Shown piece after piece: positions 673 through 49,088 of a stretch of DNA of 64,000 nt. This DNA is from Bugula neritina (Eukaryota > Animalia > Bryozoa), in contig OZ037768.1 in NCBI GenBank assembly GCA_964035545.1, forward strand, positions 8,960,741 to 9,024,740, given 5' to 3'. The translations under genes and the position numbers were made by a program. The notes below the pieces were generated by a model that did no database searches, was not told where the DNA came from, and worked only from the letters and a program-made list of their open reading frames with translations. Numbering within the stretch: the first letter of the stretch is position 1; each line of letters opens with the position of its first letter.

Positions 673-10045
<9,373 letters not shown>

Positions 10046-18157: not shown

Positions 18158-21100
18158 TTAAGAGGGCACATAGTCTGCCATCCAACTAGGTGGCTTCCGT
18201 TCTCTGGTTGAACGTCTTAGATTGTCGCTATGATTGGCGCTCTCGGTGGTGTCAACCTGGGTACTACTAGCGTTTTGTTTAGGATCCTTTGGTGTCTCAG
18301 GACTCGCTGGCTCCGTGACGAGTGGTCTGATGTCTCGCCGGTTTCTCCGAAAGAGGTTGTTGTTAAGTTGTATGGCATAGGCTCTGCTACTCAATTGTTT
18401 GTTAATTTGCGCCTCCTGCCATTTTCTCCGGTGCTGACTCCAGTCTCGAACCAAAACTGGTTGCCCTTCTTTCAGCACTGCCAAATCTCTTGCACCGTCA
18501 TTGCATCTCTGCTGCAGTTTTTCATTGCGGCCCTGCTTTTCCCACCAACCTTGGTTGTTCTCTGTTTCTGGCCGAACTTGTGGGAGTACTGACCTGGTGG
18601 GTCTTCCGATAAGTTGCTGAATTGGGCTGGCCGTCAGGCCTTCTTTGGTGGTGTTGAGATGTTCCAGTAACGCAAGTTCGGGCTCTTCACATCTGCGGAG
18701 TATACGTTTGGCTATCTTCACAGCAGACTCTGCCTTCCCATTGGACTGAGGATGATATGGAGAGCTGGTGGTGTGTGTGAAATTCCATGATTGGCTGAAA
18801 GTGGAAAACTGGTGCGAGGTAAACTGTGGTCCGTTGTCAGTGTGAACCTGTCTGGGTATTCCCAGGCGTCCAAAACAGCGCTTTATGGAGTTGATAACAG
18901 CCTCTGCTGTTTGGTTGTCCAGTCGGTCATATTCAAGGTAGTCAGTCGTATAGTCAACAATAGTAATGTAGTGAGTGTGATTGTATTCAAACAAGTCAAT
19001 TCCTACTTTGGTCCAGGGTTGTTGGGGAACTGTGTGGAGTAAAAGTGTTTCCTTCTGTTGCCGGGGAGCATCCAGTTGACATTGTCGACAGTTAGCAATA
19101 TTGTTTTTGATGTCATTGGTGATGCCAAGCCAAAACACTGTGTGGCGGGCACGTCTTAGTGTGGAGTTAATCCCATTATGGCCGGTGTGAAGTAGTTGGA
19201 GAAACTTTCTCTGGAGTGTCTTTGGAATAATGGCTCTTAGTCCTTTGTAAACAATGCCATTGTCAATAGATAGTTCGTCCTGAAAGTGTTTGTACTTGTC
19301 GTGAGTTGTGCAGTTGGCAATGTTCCAGTCATGTTTAATAAGGTTTGTCAGTGTCATAAGTTCATTGTCCTGTGCAGTAGCAGTCCTAATGTTGTCAATT
19401 AAGTCGTCACAAACAGGAGCATCATTATTTTGAGAGTCAATGTGAAAAATGTGTTCTGGTAGTTGTTGATAGTTGGGGGAGTCAAAGTATGAGTCTCTTG
19501 AGAGTAAGTCAGCCGTGATCTGTTCAGCACCCTTTTGCCAAGTTACCTTAATGTTGGGGTATCTTTGTAAGTGAAGAAGCATAGCCTGCAACCTCCGAGA
19601 TGCCTTATGAATGGATTTCCTGAAAATAGATACAAGGGGTTTGTGGTCAGTTTGGATAGTGACAGCATGGTGACCAAAGATATACTGGTCAAAGCGTTCA
19701 GTGCCAAACACTATGGCAAGGCACTCAAGCTCTAGTGGCACATAGTTCTGTTCCGATTTTGTTAAACTGCGAGATGCATATGCTACAGGCTTGCCTCCTT
19801 GCATGAGTGTTGCACCCACACCAGCATTTGAAGCGTCAGTTTGTATAGTTACTGGCTTGTTGCAGTCAAAGTATTGTAGAGTTTCTGAGTCAGTTAGTAA
19901 GGTCTTCAGTCTATTAAAAGCGTTCATTTGGTCGTCAGTCCAGTGAAAGTCTTGAGCATTGTCTTGTGTCAGTAAACGTCGTAATGGTTCAGATTCCGAT
20001 GCTAGGTTGCTAATAAATTTTGACATGTATGTGATGTGACCAAGGAATCGTTTTACTCCCTGTGGAGATGAGGGAGGTTTCATCTTAAGAATGGCTTTTA
20101 CTTTGTTAGGATCTGGTTTAAGTCCATTAGTTGTCAGTATGTGTCCAATGTAAGGTAGTTCGTCCTGAAGGAAGCGGGATTTTTCCTTGTTCAGTCTCAG
20201 TCCTGTCTGTCGAGCACGTTTGAAGAGCGCTTCAAGGTTTCTATCATGCTCTTTCCTTGTGCTTCCAAAAATTAGGATGTCATCTGCAACTATGGTGATG
20301 CCATCCAGACCAGCAAGATTTTCCGTGAGCCTTCTCTGAAACTCCTCCGGCGCTGATGCAATTCCGAAGGGTAGCCTTAGGTACTTGTACTTTCCTATGG
20401 GAGTCCAGAAAGTTGTCAAGTCTGTAGATTCCTCAGCTAGGGGAATTTGATAGAAACCTTCTTTGGCGTCACACAAGGAGAAAAACTTGGCGCCGTTGAG
20501 TTGTGGCAAAACATCTTCCAATGTTGGCATGACAGCGTGGTTTCGTTTAATTGCTTGATTGAGATTTTGCGGATCTATGCAGATGCGTATCTTTCCATTA
20601 GGCTTGCGCACTGGTTGTAGATGGCTTATCCAGTCTGTAGGTGCTTCTACCTTAGCGACAATTTGACGTTGTTCTAGTTCAAGAATAGTCTTGATGAGAT
20701 CTGATTTCATCGACAAGGGCACCTTCCGCGGTCGGACTTGCACTGGTACAGCTTCAGGTCTTAGCTCTATCCTATATTCCTGTTCAAACTTTCCAAGTCC
20801 GGTAAATATGTCATCAAAGTTAGTCAGTAAAGTCTGAAGGTCTGGGTCAGTAGTGGCAAAGTTTACATTCTCGCTTTTGGTGCTGGGCATTTGTAATAAA
20901 TCCAGGTGCAAACATGATTTCCATGACAGCAAGCTATGTTGGGTGGTTTCCACAACTAGGAATTTTAATGTAGTGTAACATCCTTGCTTGTTTAGTATCT
21001 GTATCCGTGTCCACCCTAGTGGTGCACACTTGCTCTGGTCATATAAAGTTAGTACAGTATCAGTCGGTGTAAGTTTCGGTCTACCTAGCTTGTCGTAGTC

Positions 21101-22108
21101 GATCGTATTCAAAGTATTGCATGATGCACCAGTGTCAAGTTGGAATTCAATGTCATAAATAGTATCTGCTTGCTTAGCAGTGAGCATCGCTAATAATTTA
21201 CGATCTCGTACAGTAGTGGAGATAGTACTTACATGTTGAGAGTCACTGTCTGAAGAGTAATTCCAGGTGACTTGATTGGCTGTTTCGGTCGAGTCGCGAT
21301 AATGATGCATGCGTGACCTGCAGTATGCAGCAAAGTGGTTAAATTTCTTGCAATGATTGCACTGTTTCCCATATGCTGGGCATGCTCGAGGTGGGTGATT
21401 GCCTCCACAGTTTCCACACCTAGAAGCACCAACTGATTTTCTGACGTTGGGCTGAGAGTGAGTGTGTGAAAGTTGTCCTCTGTGTTTATCAGTGTTACGA
21501 GTGTCATTAGAGTGATATTGATGAGTCGGAGGTCTATGTTTTACCAAGTTCACTTGTTCGAGTCCATATGTGTTATCCTTAGTCATAGTCTTGTAGTCAA
21601 TAGCCGATGCTTCTTCTCGTCTGCAGAGTTCAATTGCTTTGTCAAAGTCAGTCAAGTCAAACAGTTTCTTTCTAATCTTGTCACTTTCAATTCCCAGTAT
21701 CAGTGCTTGTAGTATCAGTCGGTTGTACATGTCTTTTAAGTCACATAGTCCTGCAATGGTATGTAGTTCAGTCAAAAATTCGTCAATAGTTCTATTTCCT
21801 TGCTTACAAGTCAGTAGTGAGTGAGTCTTAGCCACTAAGTTTATTCTTGGTTTGCAGTAGTCATCAAACTGTGTCACAACTTTGTCATAGTCAGTTTTGT
21901 CATTGTTGTCAGTCCAGTTGAAAGAGTCGTATATTTGGTTGCCTCGGCGACCGATAGTTCTAAGTAGGTATGCAGTTTTCACTTTGCCTTCGGCTGTATC
22001 TTTCGATGTGGCAGTTAAAAAAAGTTCGAAGTCACGTTTAAAAATCTTCCATTCCTCAGGTAAATTCGGTCCATCTGCTAATGGTTTTGGCGCTAGTAAT
22101 TGCTCCAT
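18158..22108 (-). CDS. Gag-Pol polyprotein, 1316 aa (Gag with tandem zinc knuckles, protease, RT, RNase H, integrase)
   Basis: Zinc knuckles CGNCGGNHPPRAC...CNHCKKFNHFAAYC; protease LDTGAS; RT LPFG...VADD; RNase H TDAS...ELECLAI; integrase HTGH..CRQC, IDLF, TDNGPQF, SNGKAE. Domain order PR-RT-RH-IN is Ty3/gypsy. Confidence 0.97.
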   Translation of the reverse strand: MEQLLAPKPLADGPNLPEEWKIFKRDFELFLTATSKDTAEGKVKTAYLLRTIGRRGNQIYDSFNWTDNNDKTDYDKVVTQFDDYCKPRINLVAKTHSLLTCKQGNRTIDEFLTELHTIAGLCDLKDMYNRLILQALILGIESDKIRKKLFDLTDFDKAIELCRREEASAIDYKTMTKDNTYGLEQVNLVKHRPPTHQYHSNDTRNTDKHRGQLSHTHSQPNVRKSVGASRCGNCGGNHPPRACPAYGKQCNHCKKFNHFAAYCRSRMHHYRDSTETANQVTWNYSSDSDSQHVSTISTTVRDRKLLAMLTAKQADTIYDIEFQLDTGASCNTLNTIDYDKLGRPKLTPTDTVLTLYDQSKCAPLGWTRIQILNKQGCYTTLKFLVVETTQHSLLSWKSCLHLDLLQMPSTKSENVNFATTDPDLQTLLTNFDDIFTGLGKFEQEYRIELRPEAVPVQVRPRKVPLSMKSDLIKTILELEQRQIVAKVEAPTDWISHLQPVRKPNGKIRICIDPQNLNQAIKRNHAVMPTLEDVLPQLNGAKFFSLCDAKEGFYQIPLAEESTDLTTFWTPIGKYKYLRLPFGIASAPEEFQRRLTENLAGLDGITIVADDILIFGSTRKEHDRNLEALFKRARQTGLRLNKEKSRFLQDELPYIGHILTTNGLKPDPNKVKAILKMKPPSSPQGVKRFLGHITYMSKFISNLASESEPLRRLLTQDNAQDFHWTDDQMNAFNRLKTLLTDSETLQYFDCNKPVTIQTDASNAGVGATLMQGGKPVAYASRSLTKSEQNYVPLELECLAIVFGTERFDQYIFGHHAVTIQTDHKPLVSIFRKSIHKASRRLQAMLLHLQRYPNIKVTWQKGAEQITADLLSRDSYFDSPNYQQLPEHIFHIDSQNNDAPVCDDLIDNIRTATAQDNELMTLTNLIKHDWNIANCTTHDKYKHFQDELSIDNGIVYKGLRAIIPKTLQRKFLQLLHTGHNGINSTLRRARHTVFWLGITNDIKNNIANCRQCQLDAPRQQKETLLLHTVPQQPWTKVGIDLFEYNHTHYITIVDYTTDYLEYDRLDNQTAEAVINSIKRCFGRLGIPRQVHTDNGPQFTSHQFSTFSQSWNFTHTTSSPYHPQSNGKAESAVKIAKRILRRCEEPELALLEHLNTTKEGLTASPIQQLIGRPTRSVLPQVRPETENNQGWWEKQGRNEKLQQRCNDGARDLAVLKEGQPVLVRDWSQHRRKWQEAQINKQLSSRAYAIQLNNNLFRRNRRDIRPLVTEPASPETPKDPKQNASSTQVDTTESANHSDNLRRSTRERKPPSWMADYVPS

Positions 22109-32879: not shown

Positions 32880-33630
32880 TTGCTATTACTGACCCAAACC
32901 TGCACGAATGGTTCTACAAGCAGCTCCGAGTTGGTGGTAGAAAACGATTTTAGTTGGGGGGGGTTGTAACATTCGGAGCCAATGAACTCAACCTACACAT
33001 TTTTTGACCTACGTCATGCCAGTGTGAACTTTAACCCTTTGCACCACACACTGACTTGAGTTGTAAAATGACCTTGTTTATGCGGCTTGTGCTAAATGGA
33101 ACAGATAACTCCAGATGTTCCAGACCAATTTTCCTGATTGATCTCTTTATGAAAAGTATATATAATTACATATATCAATGCTTGGAAAAATTGCGCAAAT
33201 TTTATAACGCAATGCCAAAACGTTACGTAAGGTACATTGAAGCCACAGTCATGTGCCAAGAGAAGTGGAGCTGAACTGAAAATTATAATAAAAATGGCAC
33301 AACAATTACAACTATCACTATAAAAAGCTGAAAATCAAGCTGCCATTGTATTAAAATATGTGCAGTGATACCTTATAGTTACTCGTACTAGCCTAACATC
33401 ACCAATTCTGCCATTCGGTTTCAGTGCAACTCAAACTGAAAGTGAATCTCAATCTGATAGTGTACACAGTCATACTCTGAGTATCATACTTTGATAGTGA
33501 TTCAGATTGACCATTGACGATTGTCATTCGCTTATTTTTCCGCTTCATGTTATACTTATTGTAAACACGTTGACGTGTTCACTTCAGTTCAACTGACAAC
33601 TTCATGTTTGGTACAGTTAATGCAATTATA
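32880..33630. promoter_or_regulatory. Putative bidirectional promoter region (POLR1D-isoform-2-like / MsrA)
   Basis: CpG-richer stretch between divergent genes, flanked by AT-rich quasi-repeat tracts. Confidence 0.35.
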
Positions 33631-33689
33631 AGGTAGAGTTTAACCAAAATAGTTATAAAATAAATTAAAATGTAAATAGTTATGTTTGT

Positions 33690-33850: not shown

Positions 33851-35088
33851 ATTTATATTATTACTAATATAAAATTGAATTAAATAGTTTAAACTTGAAG
33901 TTTTAAAATTAACTTCAAGATTATCTTGAAGTTAATCTTGCAATTATTTTATACATGTATATAGTAATACTAATACTAAAAGTAAATCAAAATGTACTAC
34001 TACTAATAGTAATACAGTAGTACTGATAGTATTAAATGTTACTATTACTAATAGTAATGATAATAGTAATAGTAATACTATTAGCGAGTTATTTAACAAA
34101 CAATAGATTGGAATAGACATACTCATAGTAAATTATACTAAGTTTCAGTGGTTAAACTTCAAATTCAACATTATCAGACTAACAGTAGCCTATTTTTATC
34201 TTGCTAATACTTGAAATAGAATTAAAATAATTATGGTTGACATGTAACTATAGTAACTGTTATTGTTAATTATTTTTTATGTTTGTAAATTAATTATAGT
34301 AATTTCAAGTATATTGTTATCTATATATAATATTGATCCATGCATAAAAGTAAACTAAAACAATAGTTATAGCCTACTACTACTACCACATTCTATTACT
34401 ACTTCTAATAATACTACTGCTATTACTACTAGTACTACCACTGCCACTATTAGTAATACTACTGGTACTGTGGTAGTAGTAGTGGTGGTGGTGCAGTAGT
34501 AGAAGGCATGGCAGTAGCACTACGCTGTCATTGTTGCTTTAATTTTTATTTGCTGTCACTATCATTCTGATTGTCATTCTGTGATTGTTGTGTATGTTTA
34601 TTTAAAATTCAACAGGCGTAGCTGCTTGAAACTGAAACCAAAGATACAAAGTGAAGGTATTCTGCACTTTACAAGTATCTGCAAAGCACAGCCAAGAATA
34701 GTAGTAGTTCAAATTTGTAGTAACTTGAAGTCAATTAGCTGGAATTTGAGGTGCCTTTTATACACCAAGTCTATGGGAACGGTATGTTTTTCTGTCAAGC
34801 TCTTCATTATGACAGTTACTATGTCCTATAATCATATTATATGTCTTTAGTTAAATTAGTTATCAACCAATTTTTCGGGATGAATAAAATTTTTTCAATA
34901 TCTTTTATTGTTTAGCAATGTAATGAAAAATATTAAGCAATGCTTTGAACACCAGATCACCACTGTTCCCAGGTTTTTAGTTAATTTGCTATTGCCTACA
35001 GACAAGTGAAACCTTAAGACTATCAACAAAACCTTTGTTATACTTCAACACTCCTGTGTTCATCGTCAAATTGAAATTGTTACAGGAA

Positions 35089-38000
35089 ATGTCATCTTCT
35101 AAAGTTGCAAGTGATCCTGTCGTTCCAACTGAAAAAGCAACCTTTGCACTTAGCTGATTTTGGTTCCCAGAGGCCCAGTTTGGCTGCGTCTCTGGTGTAA
35201 TACGAACCAAGGTAGGGTTTACCGGCGGATCGACAGAGTTCCCCACCTACCGAAATCTGTGAGTATTGAATAACTACTTTGTGTGATAGTTGTGAATAGT
35301 TTTATAATGAATGTATTTATAGCTGTTGAATATTAGCCTTGTTTTAGAAAAAGACTACAATGTGATTTCATTTATGCTGCAAGAAAAGCACTAATGATGC
35401 ACACGCATATTATAAATTAGTAAATAATCATGTTTAGTGGTGTGTCTACTGTCTATGCTATCTCATGAATATTGTGATTACCTTTACAATTTGATTGTAT
35501 TGTAGTCATGAAGTATGATTGATCGACTTAATATGCATTTTCCAAATCTATCTAAAAATGTTGTCTTATTTTCTTGTTTTATCCCACTATCTTATTTGTC
35601 TATCACATTCATGTAAACACTGGAGTTCTAATATTGCCTAAAATTTTGGAATTAGATAGATTTTAGCTAAACCTATTGACTTGAGGCTTAATATTCATTA
35701 GTACCACTTTATTTTTCAGAGGCGATCATACTGAGTCTGTTCAGATTGATTATGACCCTAAAGTGACATCCTACGACAAACTTTTAAAGCTCTTCTGGAA
35801 TAATCACGATTCTACTGCCTGTCATACGAGACAATATATGTCTGCTGTTTTTTATCACAATGAAGAACAAAAAGAAGCTGCTGAGAAATCTAAAGAGGTT
35901 CATCAAAAGAAAAAAATGCGCCCAGTTGTTACTAAAATAGTAAAGGCAGAAACTTTCTATGATGCTGAAAAGTAAGACTTACAATTCTGTATTGTTTCAT
36001 TGTCAAAAACACAGGCTACATAACTTGTATAATATGATGAAGGAAGTGGAGTAAGACACTAACTGTTGTACTCTATCATGTGTAGCATTGAAATTCTTGT
36101 TAATTCATTCATACAGCAAGTGAAGCATGCATTGGTGTATGATAGCAGCGACAAAGCAAAAATTTTGCTTTGTCATGATTAGTTAGGCATGAATATTTAT
36201 GACTCACAAACGCCATTCTATGGTCATATCTTTTGCTGTGTTGAAATAACAAATACTAGTTCCTGTAGTTTAGTTGATGCAACATTTCACAATTCAGAGT
36301 AGTTCTTTACTATCTTACTGCCCCATTTAAATTGTGCTTAGCCTCCTATGGGGGTAACCATTCTTTTGCAGCTATTTACTCAAAGGAACCTATTAAATAT
36401 ATTTAATTATCCTCATGTTATACGTACTTCAATTAATATAAGATAATTAGTTCAACTTTTACATGGTTTTTATTGTAGTTATCACCAGAAATATTTGTTG
36501 AGAAATAAAAGAGCGCTGTTGAACAGCTTAGGTCTCAATGACAAGCAAGTCATTACATCACACGTGGCTTGTAGACTGAATGGGTATGTTGGTGGATATG
36601 GTTCAGAGGATCAGTTTGATGAGGTTTGTGCCGTTACATATAGCTGTCATACATAGGGTTAAAATACATTTGTAGTATCAACGAAGTTTTAATTTTCATC
36701 AAACAATTTACTATATATAGGGTCATTCCACGTCAACTCAACCGATGGCCCACGCCTTTGCGTCTCAGATTTTGTTCATATTTACACCAAATGGACCTAC
36801 ACATGTCTTGAGTACTATTCTTGAATATTTCTGGCCTGACACAAAAACTTTTTGAGAAATGACTATTTTCATGAACAAAGGTTGGGAAAAATTTTGAGGA
36901 AAATTTGCGATTTTTACTTTTAGACCAATTTGTAAACGTCCATATCTCAATCATTTTTTTTAGACTGAGCTTTAAAATTTGGTGTGTGATTTGATAAAAC
37001 CTATCAGTTTGCACTAGTAGTAACACATATTGCAGAATACTTTGTGTGCATATATGCTAAGCCATTGAATATTGGCAAATTTTTGTGAATTTTGAAAAAT
37101 TTCGAATATTTGCCACGTCACAAAAAGGCGTTAATTTTTATTTTACTTCTATAAATTTTTATCCATAAATAGTTGATTATGGTGACTTTATACTCCTTAA
37201 TTTGTGTAATTTTGAAAATAATATTTTCCGAGATATAGACACCCAAAGTGAAGAAAATGTGAAAATTCGCCCAACTTCACAAGGATGTAACCCGATGTTT
37301 GAATATGTTAATATTTTTTAAACAAGCATTTTCTGTAACGTCATCTAGTGTATTTTGTAGATTCATAAATTTAAACGTCCTTATATTGTCCAAACTTAAA
37401 ATAAATTGCATGGAAAAATGGTATGTGTACGAAAATCGGCAAAATGCAATTTTTCAATATAATATGTTGGGATCATACAATTTTTATTATTCATATTGTT
37501 CAAAATGTCAAGTAGATACATATATGTCTCCTATATATGTCAAATCTACTGAAGATTATAATAAAATCTGATTTGTGTGTAATAGCATAAGAAAAATTCT
37601 GCCGATATGCATTATATGATATTCCCATTAAGTTTCAGGTAGCAATTGTTATTTCTGTGAGTGAATGGTGTGAAACAGCTGAGATTTTGCTGGAATCAAG
37701 TACATTAAGTAGCTGAAGCAAGGGTGGCTTAAAAAACATGCCCAAATATAACACCGTGGCCCTGAACACAATAGGCCTAATTAATTGAATGACGGTGGTG
37801 TTTAGTACATGCCGGAAATAATTGTGTCTTTTAAAACAGATGTGCCTAAATATAGCAGAATGGCCCTAACCTCGCCCTAATTTGGTCAGTACTGGTTAAA
37901 GAATCAAGTAATTGGCCTCATGCCATGTCTAATGTTCATCCTGAAAAAATTTACAACTCTCTTTTTCATACCTAACTGGAAACAATGGTCTTCCAACTTT

Positions 38001-40593
38001 AATATCTGGTTCAGACAGAATTCCTTTTGCAGTCTTCTGGCTTGCTGTGCAAGGTAGTTGTTGGGTTTTTACATAAGCTGGAAAAGCTTTTCCCTAATAC
38101 ATGATAGCTTTTTACATATCATCTCAGCTATATTATGCTTTTCCATTTTCATTATAGCTAATACACAAAAGCTAACTTTTTTACGGCTATAAAGACCCAG
38201 CAGTTTTTCTCTTATCCAAACTTGCATTTCACACTTGTACTGGCAACTTGTAACTCATGAGATAACCTTTTTTTTACGGTGCTATTTCTTCTGTCTGCTA
38301 CTATAATAAATATTTATTTCTCTAACTTAAAACACAACGATAATTGTTTACTCCAAATTCTATAGATGTCTTATCAATGGTCCAGCTTTCTGGTGCCAAT
38401 GTCAATAACTGGACCTTCTTTTGTCCCAAAGATACTTTCACCTTATTTAAGGAACATATTAATATGTTCAAATCTTTATGATTATTAGGCTTTATACAGG
38501 CATTTGTTGCTTCTGGGTGGAGTTCCTCTCTCTCTATACTTGCAACTGTGGCAACCTTCTTAGCAATGACCTCCTCCACTTGATTCTGTTTTTTCCCCAT
38601 AGTTCACTTTACTGGAAGGGCTAATTTTTGGGGCTCTCCTGGTATAATTCTACTCTTTTGAACTGTAGAAACTGAGAGAAACTGTGCAATATTAATTGCT
38701 TTAAAAAAAGCTGAGCTCTCAGAATACTCTCAAGAAACTAAAAGTGATGCATTTTTTGAAGTTGAGAAGGAAGCACAGACACTAAACACTGGAATGACAG
38801 AATTGGAAGCTTCTCCCGTGAAAGTTGCAAAATTAGCCCATCCAGTAAAGTGAGCTATAGGAAAAGAAAACAAAAGAAAGTGCAGGAGGTCATTACTGAA
38901 AAGGTAGAAACAGTCTTAGGTATAGATGAAGAAGAACTCCACCCAGAAGCAACAAATGTCTGTATATAAAGCGTAGTAATCATAAAGATTTGAACAAATT
39001 AGTATGATCCTTGAATAAGGACGCGGAAGTTTTCTTGTGACTAGAGAGGGTCTAGTTATTGACATTAGCATGAAAAGCTAGACCATCGATAGAACAGCCA
39101 TAGAATTTGGAGCAAACAATTACCTGGCCCAGCAAGCCAGAAAACTGCAAAGGAAATTCTGTTTGAACTAGATGGTAAAGTTGGAAAACCATTCTCTCCA
39201 CATTCAAAAGAAAAAGTTGTAGATTTTTTCAGGATGATGAATATTATTCTTAGCCTGAGCAAATTGCTAACCTGATTAGGGTGAGGTTAGGACCATTCTG
39301 CTATATTTAGACAGGTCTGTTTCAAAAGCCACAATTGTTTTCAGCATGCATTAACCCCCTCGTTGACCTAATTCGGCCTATTGTATTCAGGACCCTGGTG
39401 TTATATTTGGGTATGCTTTTTGAAGCCTTCCTTGCTTCAGCTACTTAATGTACTTGATTCCAGCAAAATTTCAGTTGTTTCACACCATTCACTCACAGAA
39501 ATAACAATTGTTACCTGAAACTTAATGGGAATATCATATAATGCATATCGGCAGAATTTTTCTTATGCTATTACACACAAATCAGATTTTATTATAATCT
39601 TCAGTAGATTTGACATATATAGGAGACATATATGTATCTACTTGACATTTTGAACAATATGAATAATAAAAATTGTATGATCCCAACATATTATATTGAA
39701 AAATTGCATTTTGCCGATTTTCGTACACATACCATTTTTCCATGCAATTTATTTTAAGTTTGGACAATATAAGGACGTTTAAATTTATGAATCTACAAAA
39801 TACACTAGATGACGTTACAGAAAATGCTTGTTTAAAAAATATTAACATATTCAAACATCGGGTTACATCCTTGTGAAGTTGGGCGAATTTTCACATTTTC
39901 TTCACTTTGGGTGTCTATATCTCGGAAAATATTATTTTCAAAATTACACAAATTAAGGAGTATAAAGTCACCATAATCAACTATTTATGGATAAAAATTT
40001 ATAGAAGTAAAATAAAAATTAACGCCTTTTGTGATGTGGCAAATATTCGAAATTTTTCAAAATTCTCAAAAATTTGCCAATATTCAATGACTTAGCATAT
40101 ATGCACACAAAGTATTCTGCAGTATGTGTTATTACTAGTGCAAACTGATAGGTGTTATCAAATCACACACCAAATTTTAAGGCTCAGTCTAGAAAAATAA
40201 TGGAGATATGGACGTTTACAAATTGGTCTAAAAGTAAAAATCGCAAATTTTCCTCAAAATTTTTCCCAACCTTTGTTCATGGAAATAGTCATTTCTCAAA
40301 AAGTTTTTGTGTCAGGCCAGAAATATTCAAGAATAGTACTCAAGACATGTGTAGGTCCATTTGGTGTAAATATGAACAAAATCTGAGACGCAAAGGCGTG
40401 GGACTTTCTGAAATTTGGTTGATTTGACGCGGAATGACCCTATAGGTTTTGGTAATTTTATGCATTACTTTACTGCTTTTTATAACTATCCATAATATTT
40501 ATTCTCTTCACTCAGGATTTGCCAAAGCTTGGTCTGAGTAAAGAACAAGAGGAGTTTGTTAGAAACTGCATTGACCAGGCATACCCTGCATAA
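35089..40593 (+). CDS. msrA: Peptide methionine sulfoxide reductase A, selenocysteine-containing (Sec23), ~214 aa
   Basis: Exons 35089-35258, 35720-35971, 36479-36623, 40516-40593 (645 nt). Translation: MSSSKVASDPVVPTEKATFALS-U-FWFPEAQFGCVSGVIRTKVGFTGGSTEFPTYRNLGDHTESVQIDYDP...QYMSAVFYH...FYDAENYHQKY...RLNGY. TGA at 35155-35157 aligns with the catalytic Cys of the GCFW motif, and a SECIS lies in the 3' UTR. Confidence 0.95.
36720..40440. mobile_element. 3.7-kb palindromic non-autonomous DNA transposon with ~1-kb TIRs (tentatively Sola-like), in the last MsrA intron
   Basis: gggtcattcc...ggaatgaccc flanked by TATA on both sides. The arms 36720-~37720 and ~39430-40440 are near-identical: the same 90-aa ORF appears on opposite strands (37299-37571 / 39582-39854). 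Degenerate transposase-like fragments lie inside (KVQLLTLAPESWTIDKTSIEFGV). Confidence 0.9.
38322..38600 (-). pseudogene. Degenerate N-terminal DNA-transposase-like fragment
   Basis: KKVQLLTLAPESWTIDKTSIEFGVNNY resembles the helix-turn-helix-like N-terminal segment of invertebrate long-TIR transposases. A decayed inverted copy lies at ~38810-39260. Confidence 0.55.
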
Positions 40594-40899
40594 GAACAAT
40601 CAGCTTTCAGTTTTTGCCATCTAAAACAATGAACTTTTTTAAAGCAGCATGTTTGTATTCAATATTATTAATAATTCCATTGATTGGACAAGATAAGCTT
40701 CTGTGAGTATTGAAACAGAAATATTAATCCAAGTTTTAAAGAAAGGTTAATACGTTATAAAATATTTTTGATATATATTTTTATACTGTGTAAGGTATAT
40801 ACATAAGGTTTGCCTACTATACTCACTTGTGGGTTATTCCTTTGCCTATAAAAATTATTACATTTTTAAGCCCCTAGCTCTATTAACAATCCCTGTCAA

Positions 40900-40975
40900 A
40901 ATGTTAAGGCTAATATTAATGACATTATTGTCTTAAAATCTAAAAAGAAAGGACAATAATTGATGAACTTATTCC
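40900..40975 (+). promoter_or_regulatory. SECIS element (type II-like) in the MsrA 3' UTR
   Basis: ATGAC (40919-40923), then an 11-bp helix attattgtctt/aggacaataat (10 Watson-Crick + 1 GU), unpaired AAA at 40935-40937, mini-stem tct/aga, and TGAT (40961-40964). It lies between the stop (40593) and AATAAA (41045-41050). Confidence 0.92.
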
Positions 40976-41221
40976 CTTGATATTTTTATTTGTGATTGTA
41001 TGTAGATGTTACATTGGAAAAATGATTTTTTTATAATTATTTACAATAAAACTCTGTTGCTATTACTCAAACTCATTTTTAAAAGTAGTATATTTTAAAC
41101 ACCATCTTATAGACTTGGAAAATTGGGTACATGTTGCTCAAAATATATTCACATGTGTACACAATTATAGAGAAAATAGGCATGCTGGAAGTTGTAAAAG
41201 TTGATATTATAAAATTGAGTA

Positions 41222-42519
41222 TTACAATGGGTTTGGTGCAACAGATGAAGAAGCTCTAGCTTCTGATCTAATTTTATATAAATTTTGCAGTTTACTCCAA
41301 ACTCCTTGACACATGGCTTGCAGCTTTTCATCTCTAAGCTCATTCTTTGCACGACCATGTATAATTCTAAAACAACAGGCATCTTTCTCTCACTTTTAAA
41401 TAAAACAATGCAAATTCAAACGGTTTAAATCTAGTTACGCAAATATCTTGACCAGAAGCTTCACATTTAATAGAGTTATCATATCAATTACCTCACAATC
41501 TTTTTGGCTTGTTGGAGTTGTCCTCTTTGGATCATACTAAGTGAGTAGTAGAGTCTGCATCTATATTCTAGCCCAATATCTCCAAGTTCAAATGCCAATT
41601 TAAACTGCTTCACAGACAAGTTACCAGCGGTAGCTGCCTTTCAAATATACAAAAAAATAAATCACACTGGATGAGAAAGTTCATATAAAATAATGCTCTC
41701 TAGTCACATATATATAATAGCGAAAATAAAAAACTGAATGGTTATGGTGTATGACTGTATGCTCTCGAAAGCATAGTTTACTGCTTTAAACCAGCAAATG
41801 TATATATGATGGCTTATAACCAATAAATTGCTTGGTGACAACTCACATGCTGTGCTGAGTGTTCACCTAATGCAGAAAAGCCCCCTCCAAGAGTAGAAAG
41901 CCATGCAGCAGCATCTTTCAACAAAGACCATTTATAAGAAAGAAGCTGTAATCTAAAGTCCCTAAAATATATCCAACCAAATACAATGCGAGAATACACA
42001 TGGAAAGCAAGAAAAGTAACATATTTCACCTGAATTATATATATATTTAATTAACAAGTTTTACATTTAGTAATCTCATTTTACATTATTCTGCTATAAA
42101 AATTTTCCAGCTAATGGTTTTATGCAGTGTGCAAAAAATTAGTTTAGAAAAACTTTTTTTATAATGCGTTAGAAGAAATCTCACCATGCGTAATCTATTT
42201 GTGAGTATGTTTCTGTATGGAGCACCAAGTTTAAATGCACAAGGCATGATTTGGATTTTAACTGCTTCAAATTCTTCGCTTTCCAGGCAACATATTGAGC
42301 ATATTTGTTCATAGACACTGCAAAAGTTGAGCTCCGCTGTGAACAGTGTACTAATGCTGAAGCAAGATCACAGCGGGCTGTGAAGCTTTTTGAGTCAACA
42401 AAGCATTTGCAGTGAGGTGATGATGGACACTGATAATTTTTTATATATATAAATTCTGTAGCAACCGGTACTCCAGTGTACGTATATATTTCTATAACAA
42501 GTATGCCAGGAGACTCCAT
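41222..42519 (-). CDS. Uncharacterised conserved protein, DUF4807 / C. elegans F58A4.6-like, ~246 aa
   Basis: Exons 42519-42185, 41961-41847, 41637-41492, 41366-41222 (741 nt). Motifs IDYAW...WLSTLGGGFSALG...AGNLSVKQFKLAFELGD...RCRLYYSLSMIQRG...KLQAMCQGVWSKL. Confidence 0.82.
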
Positions 42520-45285: not shown

Positions 45286-45585
45286 GATTAGACAGCAATC
45301 ATCAAGAAGGGCCAAGGGCTTAATCTTTTATACAGAAGCTACAGGCACAAGAAGGGTAGAGCCCATGGATCGAAACAGCGTTGGAGATGTGTGAACGTTG
45401 GCTGCCCTGGCTGTGTGCACACAGAGTCTGGCTCCCAGGTTGGGGACCACCCTCATGTCCTTCACTTTGTGGAGCATAGTCACATGCCAAATGAGGAGCA
45501 AGTTCATGCTTTCAAGATTAAGTCTCAGGTGTGTGAGCTTGCTTCACGGGATCTGCTACAGCCGCTCTGTTCTCTGGTTATTTAA
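45286..45585 (+). pseudogene. FLYWCH zinc-finger fragment, probably a Mutator-type transposase relic
   Basis: Open frame ...LIFLYRSYRHKKGRAHGSKQRWRCVNVGCPGCVHTE...HVLHFVEHSHMP has the Y..W.C....C...H.H FLYWCH pattern. No ATG start and no downstream DDE domain. Confidence 0.65.
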
Positions 45586-46355
45586 ATATACATATATTTC
45601 AATATTAAAATAAATTACACATAAAACACATATATTGTTATCAAAATAGAAACATAGGGTCTAACTGGGAAGCGTCTATCTGGAATGACATCATAATGAC
45701 AGACAGCTTGAGAAAATCATAACCAATGGCTGATGACTAATGTTGTACTACTACTCTAATACCATTAATAGTATAGGTATTAATTAAGTCATACTCAAAG
45801 TCATACTGATGCTTATGCTATTAAATTTAGTATTATGCTCTATTACTATTAGTATTACTTATAGTTATACAGTTATATAGTAATATATTATTTATACTAT
45901 TACTATATAAATAGTATAATTCCTGTTCTGTAAGTAATTGTTCTTTAGCATAACTATAGCTATTAGTAAAACTGTGGTTGTCACTTATGTGCTTTGTCTT
46001 ATTTTATTATTTTGAGATTTATACTGTGGTCGTAGTGCAACTGGTAACGATGCTCACACTCAAAATAATGATGGTCAAGATAATGAATGTCAGTTTGATA
46101 GTTTTTATCAAAGTCTTGGTCATCTGTAGTTATAGTAATAGTTGAATAGATAGTTAAAACACTCCAGGGGTATGTATAATAATGATAACAAAAAGTTTTA
46201 TTCTTTTGGAAATAAGCTGTAGCCATTTGCTTTTCAAATGTAAAGCAGCATATTTTCCAAGTGTTTTCTTTTAGATAATATTACTTATTGTGTGTCTATT
46301 CAACTTACTCTTATTTTTATAACAATTATGATTATTATATTACAAGTGTAGAGTT

Positions 46356-49088
46356 ATGGAGGATAATACTAATACACATAGTGACCAGGAGGAATGCAGA
46401 GACTATAAAAGAAATGTCTGTACAAAGGGAAGTGCTTGTAAATATTACCACCCACCAAAAGATGTGTCAGCAATCTTTGAGCGAAATTCTGTGTGTCATG
46501 ATTACCAGAACCAAAAGGTCAGTTCTACTTTGCATTTTAGATATCATATTTACGATGAAAAATAGCCTACTTTAAATTTCTTGCAATAAGGCTTTGTATT
46601 TTTGCACGTTTTATTTTGTTAGATAAAATTCTCTTTTGATTAAATTATGATGTTACATGTCAAATTTGTATCAATCGGTATTGATAGCACATTATTTCGA
46701 TGCTATCTTTTTAATATCTCCATAAAATGCTATATGTGTAAATTGTAAAGTGTTATAATGACAAAATAGTATAAAAATTTCATATATGAACTAGGAACAC
46801 ATATATAAAAACTAAAGATGCATTTTTTTAAAGATGACATTACCAAATAGTAGGATATAAAGGATTAAAGCAAAAAATATGTAGACTATTTTGCCCTGCC
46901 CAGTTGTTATCCATGTTTGTCTATGAGTCACCAGCTACTACAACTGTTTATCAATACTTGTTAGGGTTGTCATCGAGACTCGTGTAAATTTCTGCATTTG
47001 ACGCGAGAAGAAGAAGCTTTTATAAAAGCCAATGGCTCGTGTCCACCATCATTATCACAAGAAGAAATGGATAAAATCATTGGATTAGTAAGTGTTTGCC
47101 TCCCTATCTAATAACATACCTGTAGATAGTTTCTAGTGGTACAATATTCATATGTGCATGCTGGGTATCTTTTCTTGGTCTAATTCAATGGTACATTCAA
47201 CAGTCATGGAGTGAATTGAAGCAACTTCATATGATTTGTAATGGCAGTGTCACCATATCTTCCTTTGTCCTGGTGACCACAACACCAGTCTATCTACAGC
47301 ATAAATAAGAAATGTGAATATTTTGTTAAGTTGGGTCAAAGTTAGGCAGTAGCGCTGAAAATCAAAGCGATTGATAGGAGTAGCATATCTGGTTTAACTT
47401 TAGTAAACTGGCAAATGAAGTATTAGAGAATAATCATAGTAGCTAGTTTATCTCCTGCTAAAGACTTGTCAAGTAACACCTTGTACTATAAGGGTTGACC
47501 ATCCTTGTGAATATTGTAACAATTTCCTTATGATGCAGAATTATTGAGGAAGCAATTAATTCTAGCCCCACTTGCATATTATTGTGACATGTATCAAAAT
47601 TTGACCTTGTTTACAGCCACCTTTATGTAATGACTATCTGCGTGGTACGTGTACTCGTGGTAAGAAGTGCAAATTCAGGCACGTTGGTGAACCTGGTGTT
47701 GAGAGTCAAGGAGGTAGAGCTCCTTTTAGAGGGGTTAATCACGGTACGGACAGGTTTGTGCCATATGGGAGGCCCGCAGAAGAAGACCCATACGACAGGT
47801 AGTTGTGTAGTCTGCTTGCTACTATGAAAAACTTGATATAATGAATAAAATTTAGACTATTAACTAGAATAAAAATTAAAAATAATTATGTGATACTTTT
47901 TTAGCACTCTTTTAGTTGGACATATCATATGTTCATATTATTTTGGTATTAAAGTGGAATGTAGAGTCAGGATAACACTCACCCTAAAGAGAACATACAA
48001 CTCTTACAACTTGACCACATGTTGTAAGACTAGCATAACTTTTATCACGTCAAGAGGCCTGATAATTTCACCTTTTTTGAATGGAATTTGTTGCCACCAC
48101 ATTGTACAACCAAAATCAAAATGGTTTTTAGCAAGTTTTAATGTAAAGTTAAAAACAAGAAGTATTTTAAACATAGCTTATGGGTTGTTGAAACTGCAGT
48201 CTCATAGAGGACCTATGATATTTTTTCTTTGTGGGCTCGGCTATAGAATTATATGTTGTGTAGTATCCTTTATTAGTGGACCATAACATCAGAGCAATTT
48301 ACATCCTGCATTGTCTTCTCAGGAGTATAAGGTTATTAGTTTTGGTTTAGGATGGAGAGAAGAAGGCGATACAGAGAAGATATGATGGAAGATGAAATCA
48401 TGTATCTCAGAGCTCAGGTTTGTCGATCATTAGTTTCTTTCTCATGAGATTTGATCCGATTGCTATGCATTAGTAGAATATACAGGCCTGCACTAGATTT
48501 TTAAAACATTGCTAATTATTTGCTGAATTTGTATATAATATGATGTTTAAAGCCTGCATAACTTTGAAACAGCAGTTTTGAGGGAAAAAAGGTTATTCAC
48601 TTTATTTTGTCATAAGCTCTATGTGACTTTCCAGAGATTAGCCACAGTTTATGTGATGAGTTTATGCTGGGTTACTTTAGGTTATCTGATAAAGAAGATG
48701 CAAGGATAGCATCTTGAAGTTGTTGTTTTGTTTTTTTTTCTGTTCAAAAATTTAAGCATTATTATACTGGTAATAGAGTGCATGCAGGTTCTCTGCTCTC
48801 AATGCCCTGTTATGTGATTAGGTTGGCCGACTCAAACGACAAGTTGCTGATCTTGCCGCCACAAATGAATCATTAATGACTGAAAATGCACGACTAAGAG
48901 TGGATCGAAACAGGGCAGCTGGGGGTATTAATCCTCTACCTGCTATCACAGGCAGAACAAGTGAATTCAGCATTACACCGTCCCGATCAGCCTACCCTTA
49001 CACTTCAGGTCTTAAACTTGAGCCATCAACTACTCCACTACCCACAGCTTCTACTCTGGCTTATAGCAGCTCTGAACTTCTATTCTAG
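46356..49088 (+). CDS. ZC3H10: Zinc finger CCCH domain-containing protein 10-like, ~266 aa
   Basis: Exons 46356-46517, 46965-47087, 47617-47798, 48351-48417, 48822-49088 (801 nt). Three CCCH fingers (CRDYKRNVCTKGSACKYYH; CHDYQNQKGCHRDSCKFLH; CNDYLRGTCTRGKKCKFRH) and the coiled coil VADLAATNESLMTENARLR typical of ZC3H10. Confidence 0.9.

Follow-up and report, generated by a model that had tools for sequence, protein, structure and literature searches.

Selenocysteine-containing forms of the methionine-S-sulfoxide reductase MsrA (Sec-MsrA) have been reported as widespread in marine invertebrates by Jiang et al., who found them in all but one of six species ranging from sponge to amphioxus (PMC3473315), with Amphimedon, Trichoplax, Nematostella, Capitella and Branchiostoma as the described cases (PMC3473315). 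The centipede genome paper lists the selenocysteine (Sec) form in Strigamia, Daphnia and Ixodes and argues that it is ancestral (PMC4244043), and Sec-MsrA is among the most widespread selenoproteins of algae (PMC7539508). In the bacterium Clostridium (Alkaliphilus) oremlandii, the Sec enzyme, which cannot do without its helical domain and relies on glutaredoxin for recycling, has 20 times the activity of the Cys form (PMC4333827), while in mammals the mitochondrial and the myristoylated cytosolic forms of MsrA arise from two translation starts (PMC6316033). Here we analyse an MsrA gene of the bryozoan Bugula neritina, contained in a stretch of 64,000 nucleotides that we call the window (GenBank assembly GCA_964035545.1, contig OZ037768.1, positions 8,960,741 to 9,024,740 of the forward strand). 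A first-pass annotation of this DNA had proposed that the gene encodes a Sec-MsrA, a form it took to be only sporadic in animals; the published record, with its marine invertebrates as well as centipede, Daphnia, tick and amphioxus, does not support the second part of that statement (PMC3473315, PMC4244043), and the first part is the subject of what follows.

The gene almost certainly encodes a functional selenoprotein MsrA of the two-domain, helical-domain type. Counted from ATG 35089-91, four exons (35089-35258, 35720-35971, 36479-36623 and 40516-40593) are joined in phases 2, 2 and 0, every intron being GT-AG, and a TGA at 35155-57 lies in frame as codon 23, in the context A-T-F-A-L-S-*-F-W-F-P-E-A-Q-F-G. 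Past this TGA the frame remains open for 191 codons and ends in a TAA at 40591-93, in agreement with the in-frame TGA and the roughly 190 codons of MsrA homology over four clean exons described at first pass. The coding features are as follows.

35086..35258, plus strand: exon 1, coding, with a downstream Met in frame at ATG 35089
35155..35157, plus strand: catalytic-position TGA (Sec), aligned with Cys16/Sec16 of C. oremlandii MsrA
35720..35971, plus strand: exon 2, PMSR core, containing the R-Q-Y motif and, within H-T-E, the catalytic Glu
36479..36623, plus strand: exon 3, Y-H-Q-K-Y motif and beginning of the MsrA_helical domain (PF20939)
40516..40593, plus strand: exon 4, coding part, with the TAA at 40591-40593; three contigs have loose ends at 36624 that match its start

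Protein comparisons were made exon by exon. The Pfam PMSR family (PF01625), with a cut-off of 23.7 bits, is matched above that cut-off both by the part of exon 1 that follows the TGA (28.8 bits, profile positions 9-40) and by exon 2 (77.7 bits, positions 48-137), and exon 3 matches MsrA_helical (PF20939) with 39.9 bits and an E-value of 3.6e-10. The closest matches in the PDB are the same for exons 1 and 2, namely the MsrA entries 4lwj, 4u66 and 4w8c, of 208-217 amino acids (aa); exon 3 searched alone against the PDB gave no match. The residue numbering of all three agrees with that of C. oremlandii Sec-MsrA, and since their F17 is the counterpart of the first residue beyond the TGA, the TGA occupies catalytic position 16. 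Against these top chains, and in C. oremlandii numbering, the F-W that follows corresponds to F17-W18, and the active-site Tyr, Glu and Gln-Tyr correspond to Y47, E55 and Q89/Y90, while the His and Tyr of Y-H-Q-K-Y correspond to H137 and Y140 by position only. Searches of the assembly (216,009,554 bases in 321 contigs, of which C1, C2 and C3 are host chromosomes of 35.64, 33.58 and 32.42 Mb) with PF01625 and with exon 2 returned this MsrA locus only, which is thus apparently the single MsrA gene of the B. neritina genome.

The residue written at the catalytic site in databases differs from what the DNA encodes. The site reads S-W-F-W-F-P in 35 database homologues, and when loci with the S motif were read as DNA a TGA was found in eight of eight (five distinct transcripts and the loci L030, L094 and L095). 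Since the DNA reads TGA in every such locus examined, we regard the Trp as a product of gene callers. The full string A-T-F-A-L-S-TGA-F-W recurs in L013, L094 and L095, which makes the S-U-F-W motif, at first taken to be atypical, the usual motif of the invertebrate Sec-MsrA group. Variants of it are R-TGA-F-W-F-P in L097 (TGA at positions 48-50), accompanied by a SECIS-like 3' hairpin (SECIS, selenocysteine insertion sequence), and G-TGA-F-W-G-P in L031. In all, TGA stands at the equivalent codon in the eight S-motif loci, one R-motif locus and one G-motif locus, and the other MsrA loci (n=42) have Cys codons within G-C or A-C motifs. A single S-C-F-W-F-P protein (P0201), whose DNA is not on record, is a putative case of Sec/Cys exchange within the exact S motif. 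Most database homologues are truncated N-terminally or carry Trp in place of the TGA, as had been foreseen for standard annotation of such a gene; our searches also match proteins of Amphimedon, Daphnia, Branchiostoma, Acropora and Saccoglossus, mostly cut off before the catalytic site. A quick tree of exon 2 (84 columns, weak resolution) tentatively places the gene beside P0151 and P0088, with a Shimodaira-Hasegawa-like approximate likelihood ratio (SH-aLRT) support of 93, among the S-U-F-W-F-P proteins.

Four runs that are probably RNA supplied contigs for placement on positions 34560-36705 (2,146 letters). Introns 1 and 2 are supported by joints in these contigs, three of which have loose ends at 36624 that continue into exon 4. 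One spliced contig (X4 record 12) spans 35085-35244 with two differences from the assembly, at 35126 and 35133, and leaves the TGA unchanged. The lineage of these runs, like the genomic contigs L011 and L012, differs from the assembly by about 8-10% in introns, so that the TGA at 35155-57 is found intact in probable RNA from a diverged lineage. This bears on whether an assembly error or RNA editing might hide a true codon TGT or TGC, which is conceivable in principle for any single assembly and has nothing positive in its favour; given the independent spliced contig, the TGA retained in homologues and an assembly quality value (QV) of 53.7 (PMC11480708), we consider its probability negligible.

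The codons beyond the TGA provide a further view of the gene. Across 156 codons of exons 2-4, L011 differs from the assembly by 12 synonymous and 2 conservative changes, and the close relative L095 differs at 84 codons by synonymous changes only and at 51 by replacement, with no stops and with equal intron positions. Judged from these counts, purifying selection is acting downstream of the TGA, where relaxed selection might have been looked for. A pseudogene or nonsense allele, in which the TGA is a true stop and the gene is dead, could draw on the early in-frame TGA, on a 3.7-kb transposon in intron 3 and on a frameshift in L012. However, a TGA at the equal codon in many distant animals and in the sister lineage, the selection on the downstream codons, the SECIS described below, the spliced contigs and the lack of a second MsrA in the genome all oppose it, and we hold it to be extremely unlikely.

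In the 3' untranslated region (UTR), the frame is followed by two elements.

40898..40987, plus strand: type-II SECIS with AUGA core at 40919, 11-bp helix II, partner GA at 40962-63 and lower stems
41045..41050, plus strand: AATAAA, the only one in the 3' region and downstream of the SECIS, likely the poly(A) signal

The core lies 326 nt past the TAA, matching the canonical SECIS reported about 325 nt after the stop at first pass. Its apex consists of an unpaired AAA and a 3-bp mini-stem, and all SECIS motifs are complete. A pattern scan of both strands of the 64-kb window gave this element as its sole match, at a chance rate in shuffled sequence of 0.53 per 64-kb strand, equal to about 0.004 per 470-nt UTR, and the fold has a z-score of -2.85. 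The core is identical at 48 of 48 positions in L011 and L012, and the single change in the lower stem converts an A-U pair to G-U. Words of the last exon are found in the RNA runs at a share of 0.36, compared with an expected 0.38 if the whole exon and the SECIS are included and 0.21 if the transcript ends before the SECIS, which lends indirect support to the MsrA mRNA carrying the element. Three contigs run 853-1804 nt past exon 3, where 451 nt reaches the end of the SECIS core; 30 of these letters were read, and a convergent gene may overlap there. That gene, on the minus strand at 41152-41640, matches DUF4807 (PF16065, E 8e-17) and has its end roughly 100 nt away from the poly(A) signal of MsrA, and a minus-strand AATAAA at 40990 suggests that its 3' UTR overlaps that of MsrA beside the SECIS.

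The machinery for Sec decoding was sought in the assembly and located on C1-C3. A tRNA-Sec with a TCA anticodon (79.9 bits) and a multi-exon host copy of SepSecS lie on C2, eEFSec lies on C3 together with an L7Ae domain of SBP2 type, and SPS2 lies on C1 (L024, 12.888-12.890 Mb), where it has an in-frame TGA of its own (G-TGA-G-C-K-V-P). The L7Ae domain is assigned to the SBP2 type by its motif. A second selenophosphate synthetase-like gene on C2 (L026, 10.410-10.412 Mb) is a candidate SPS1-like gene. The top SepSecS matches of the assembly were rejected as evidence about the host: these copies, on contig C264 (65894-75498, L007 and L008), are open only if TAA and TAG are read as Gln (450 vs 85 aa), a pattern by which the contig is sequence of a ciliate-code cobiont. 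Such contigs within the assembly can mislead genome-wide counts.

Ciliate-code contigs and the Trp of database proteins are also what could be cited for a UGA decoded as Cys or Trp, through read-through or an altered code, or for a main product that is an internally initiated, catalytically dead fragment. However, gene callers account for the Trp, which could not serve as the nucleophile; the MsrA gene, on a host chromosome of 24.8 Mb, closes with TAA; and a canonical SECIS is present along with the Sec machinery. We therefore rate decoding other than by Sec as highly unlikely. The proposal that the gene encodes a Sec-MsrA is upheld, at the level of sequence, by the TGA, the SECIS, the domains, the machinery and the selection on the downstream codons.

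Several observations weigh against the selenoprotein assignment. The Rfam model SECIS_1 scores 31.2 bits (E 3e-4) on the element, under its gathering score of 35 bits, and Rfam at the gathering threshold reports nothing in the window; because Rfam also missed the SECIS-like hairpins of L013 and L097, which were recognised by pattern scan or by reading, the low score is weak evidence against a SECIS. The conservation of the core, 0 changes in 48 against 3.9% in the preceding UTR, is not significant alone (P ~0.15), and the evidence for inclusion of the SECIS in the mRNA is indirect. The RNA nature of the runs is a guess, and X4 alone covers the TGA. The Joint Genome Institute (JGI) contig L012 of the sister lineage carries in its exon 2 a frameshift following codon 54, which is absent from L011 and from the placed contigs and is probably an assembly error. 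The PSTK match on C2 is weak, and the protein is known here from sequence data alone.

For the selenoprotein itself, the established eukaryotic pathway suggests how the codon would be read: SBP2 would bind the kink-turn of the 3'-UTR SECIS and eEFSec would bring Sec-tRNA, and the UGA would be decoded as Sec. Attack of the selenolate on Met-S-sulfoxide would then free Met and leave a selenenic acid. Recycling is less certain and might proceed via the Cys of the H-D...C...R-Q-Y loop, or directly by glutaredoxin and glutathione (GSH) as in C. oremlandii MsrA. L095 and 20 of 26 group members share the loop Cys; another candidate for recycling, the Cys of Q-F-G-C, occurs in 22 of 36. The bryozoan MsrA has no C-terminal Cys, such as is found within the last six residues of 8 of the 17 full-length group members.

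The N-terminus extends beyond the exon that was initially read as the first coding exon with Sec at residue 23, since a spliced exon lies upstream of it.

34616..34781, plus strand: exon 0, seen in X4 record 12, a spliced contig (joint 34780>35085, GT..AG), and also in record 11
33604..33632, plus strand: candidate end of a further upstream coding exon, from sequence only; ATG 33604, donor AAG/GTAGAG, phase 2, in frame with exon 0

Exon 0 is separated from 35086 by an intron of 304 nt with GT-AG ends, as given by X4 record 12, and itself ends in ATG-GGA-ACG (34773-81) in the MsrA frame, adding M-G-T-E to give the start M-G-T-E-M-S. Counted from ATG 34773 the protein has 218 aa and selenocysteine is residue 27. 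An M-G-x-x-x-S start is thus present in the spliced mRNA model, with ATG 34773 in frame with 35086, and M-G-T-E-M-S fits the N-myristoylation consensus G-x-x-x-S. In L095 the acceptor likewise lies three bases ahead of the Met, with an acidic codon in frame. Translation would most likely start at ATG 34773, with a putative myristoylatable Gly2, and leaky starts might occur at 35089 and possibly upstream too.

Another way to view exon 0 is as part of a longer coding region. Read in the MsrA frame, its 55 codons include no stop, as is the case in about 5% of random frames of the window, and in 52 codons it encodes 9 Lys/Arg and 1 Asp/Glu; a search for relatives of exon 0 found none. The candidate exon at 33604-33632 would begin a basic, acid-poor presequence and has an initiator-like (Inr-like) TCAGT at 33584. 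A rival in-frame candidate donor for exon 0 lies at 33231, and the stretch covered in the contig placement begins at 34560, downstream of the candidate exon. Several homologues have a basic N-terminal extension ahead of a second Met, and the frame of exon 0 and ATG 33604 may encode a putative mitochondrial presequence. Leaky scanning over up to three in-frame AUGs could then produce mitochondrial, myristoylated and plain cytosolic Sec-MsrA from one gene, a tentative proposal that we judge somewhat more doubtful than probable. If it is true, selenium would be required for MsrA activity in every compartment of the animal, and the helical-domain Sec group would offer a parallel to the design, with two starts and myristoylation, of the more distantly related mammalian Cys-MsrA.

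The remaining features of the window lie outside the mRNA of the gene. Intron 3 is occupied by a mobile element.

36720..40440, no strand: palindromic DNA transposon of 3.7 kb in intron 3, ending in GGG...CCC and flanked by the 4-bp target duplication TATA, outside the mRNA

The element is palindromic nearly throughout, its outer 1-kb arms being 92-99% complementary and its inner arms about 80%, and its arms have at least 40 matches of 92-100% identity across chromosomes. Target duplications vary, from TATA here to AATA, GTTT, ATGT and TACT at four other copies. The transposon is missing from the contigs of the sister lineage, where the intron measures 162 nt. As it contains no open reading frame of 100 aa or more, it is presumably non-autonomous, and its ends and duplication are reminiscent of Sola2 elements. 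Elsewhere in the window, the minus strand at 18158-22108 carries an open pol frame of 1316 aa from a long terminal repeat (LTR) retrotransposon, with the Ty3/Gypsy arrangement of reverse transcriptase, RNase H and integrase. Plus-strand exons at 46332-47799, 45292-45582 and 8836-9153 match CCCH zinc fingers, FLYWCH (weakly) and part of a protein kinase.

The Sec-MsrA arrangement is already known in sponges, corals, worms, crustaceans and amphioxus, and the bryozoan gene shows every testable feature of the family. Bryozoa thus joins the phyla with Sec-MsrA, in agreement with the published view of the Sec form as ancestral in animals, while knowledge of Sec decoding and of MsrA chemistry is unchanged by this gene. 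For annotation, the genome's only MsrA would otherwise look truncated or devoid of its catalytic residue. Because no assay of an animal Sec-MsrA was found in the literature searched, the gene would also be a usable test case. The same search found no paper on Bugula selenoproteins, and Bryozoa is not among the phyla in the papers it returned.

Compared with the invertebrate Sec-MsrA proteins, the bryozoan gene is alike in its UGA at the catalytic site, its 3'-UTR SECIS, its PMSR and MsrA_helical domains and the motif S-U-F-W-F-P-E-x-x-F/Y-G of homologues read from DNA, and is unlike them in its M-G-T-E-M-S start, the absence of a C-terminal Cys and the lineage-specific transposon in intron 3. 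Among solved structures, the C. oremlandii Sec-MsrA gives exons 1 and 2 their best match, and it shares the aligned Sec, PF20939, Y47, E55 and Q89/Y90. However, it is bacterial, reads G-U-F-W-G and is devoid of Cys; the bryozoan protein contains four, of which two are kept in L095, and its gene has a eukaryotic 3'-UTR SECIS. Mammalian MsrA shares the PMSR fold and chemistry but uses Cys in a G-C-F-W-G motif and lacks the helical domain (PMC4333827), and its match to exon 2 is weaker (E ~6e-10 vs 1e-14). By analogy, the M-G-x-x-x-S start of the bryozoan protein, set behind an open, basic and acid-poor frame, suggests a two-location scheme like that of mammalian MsrA.

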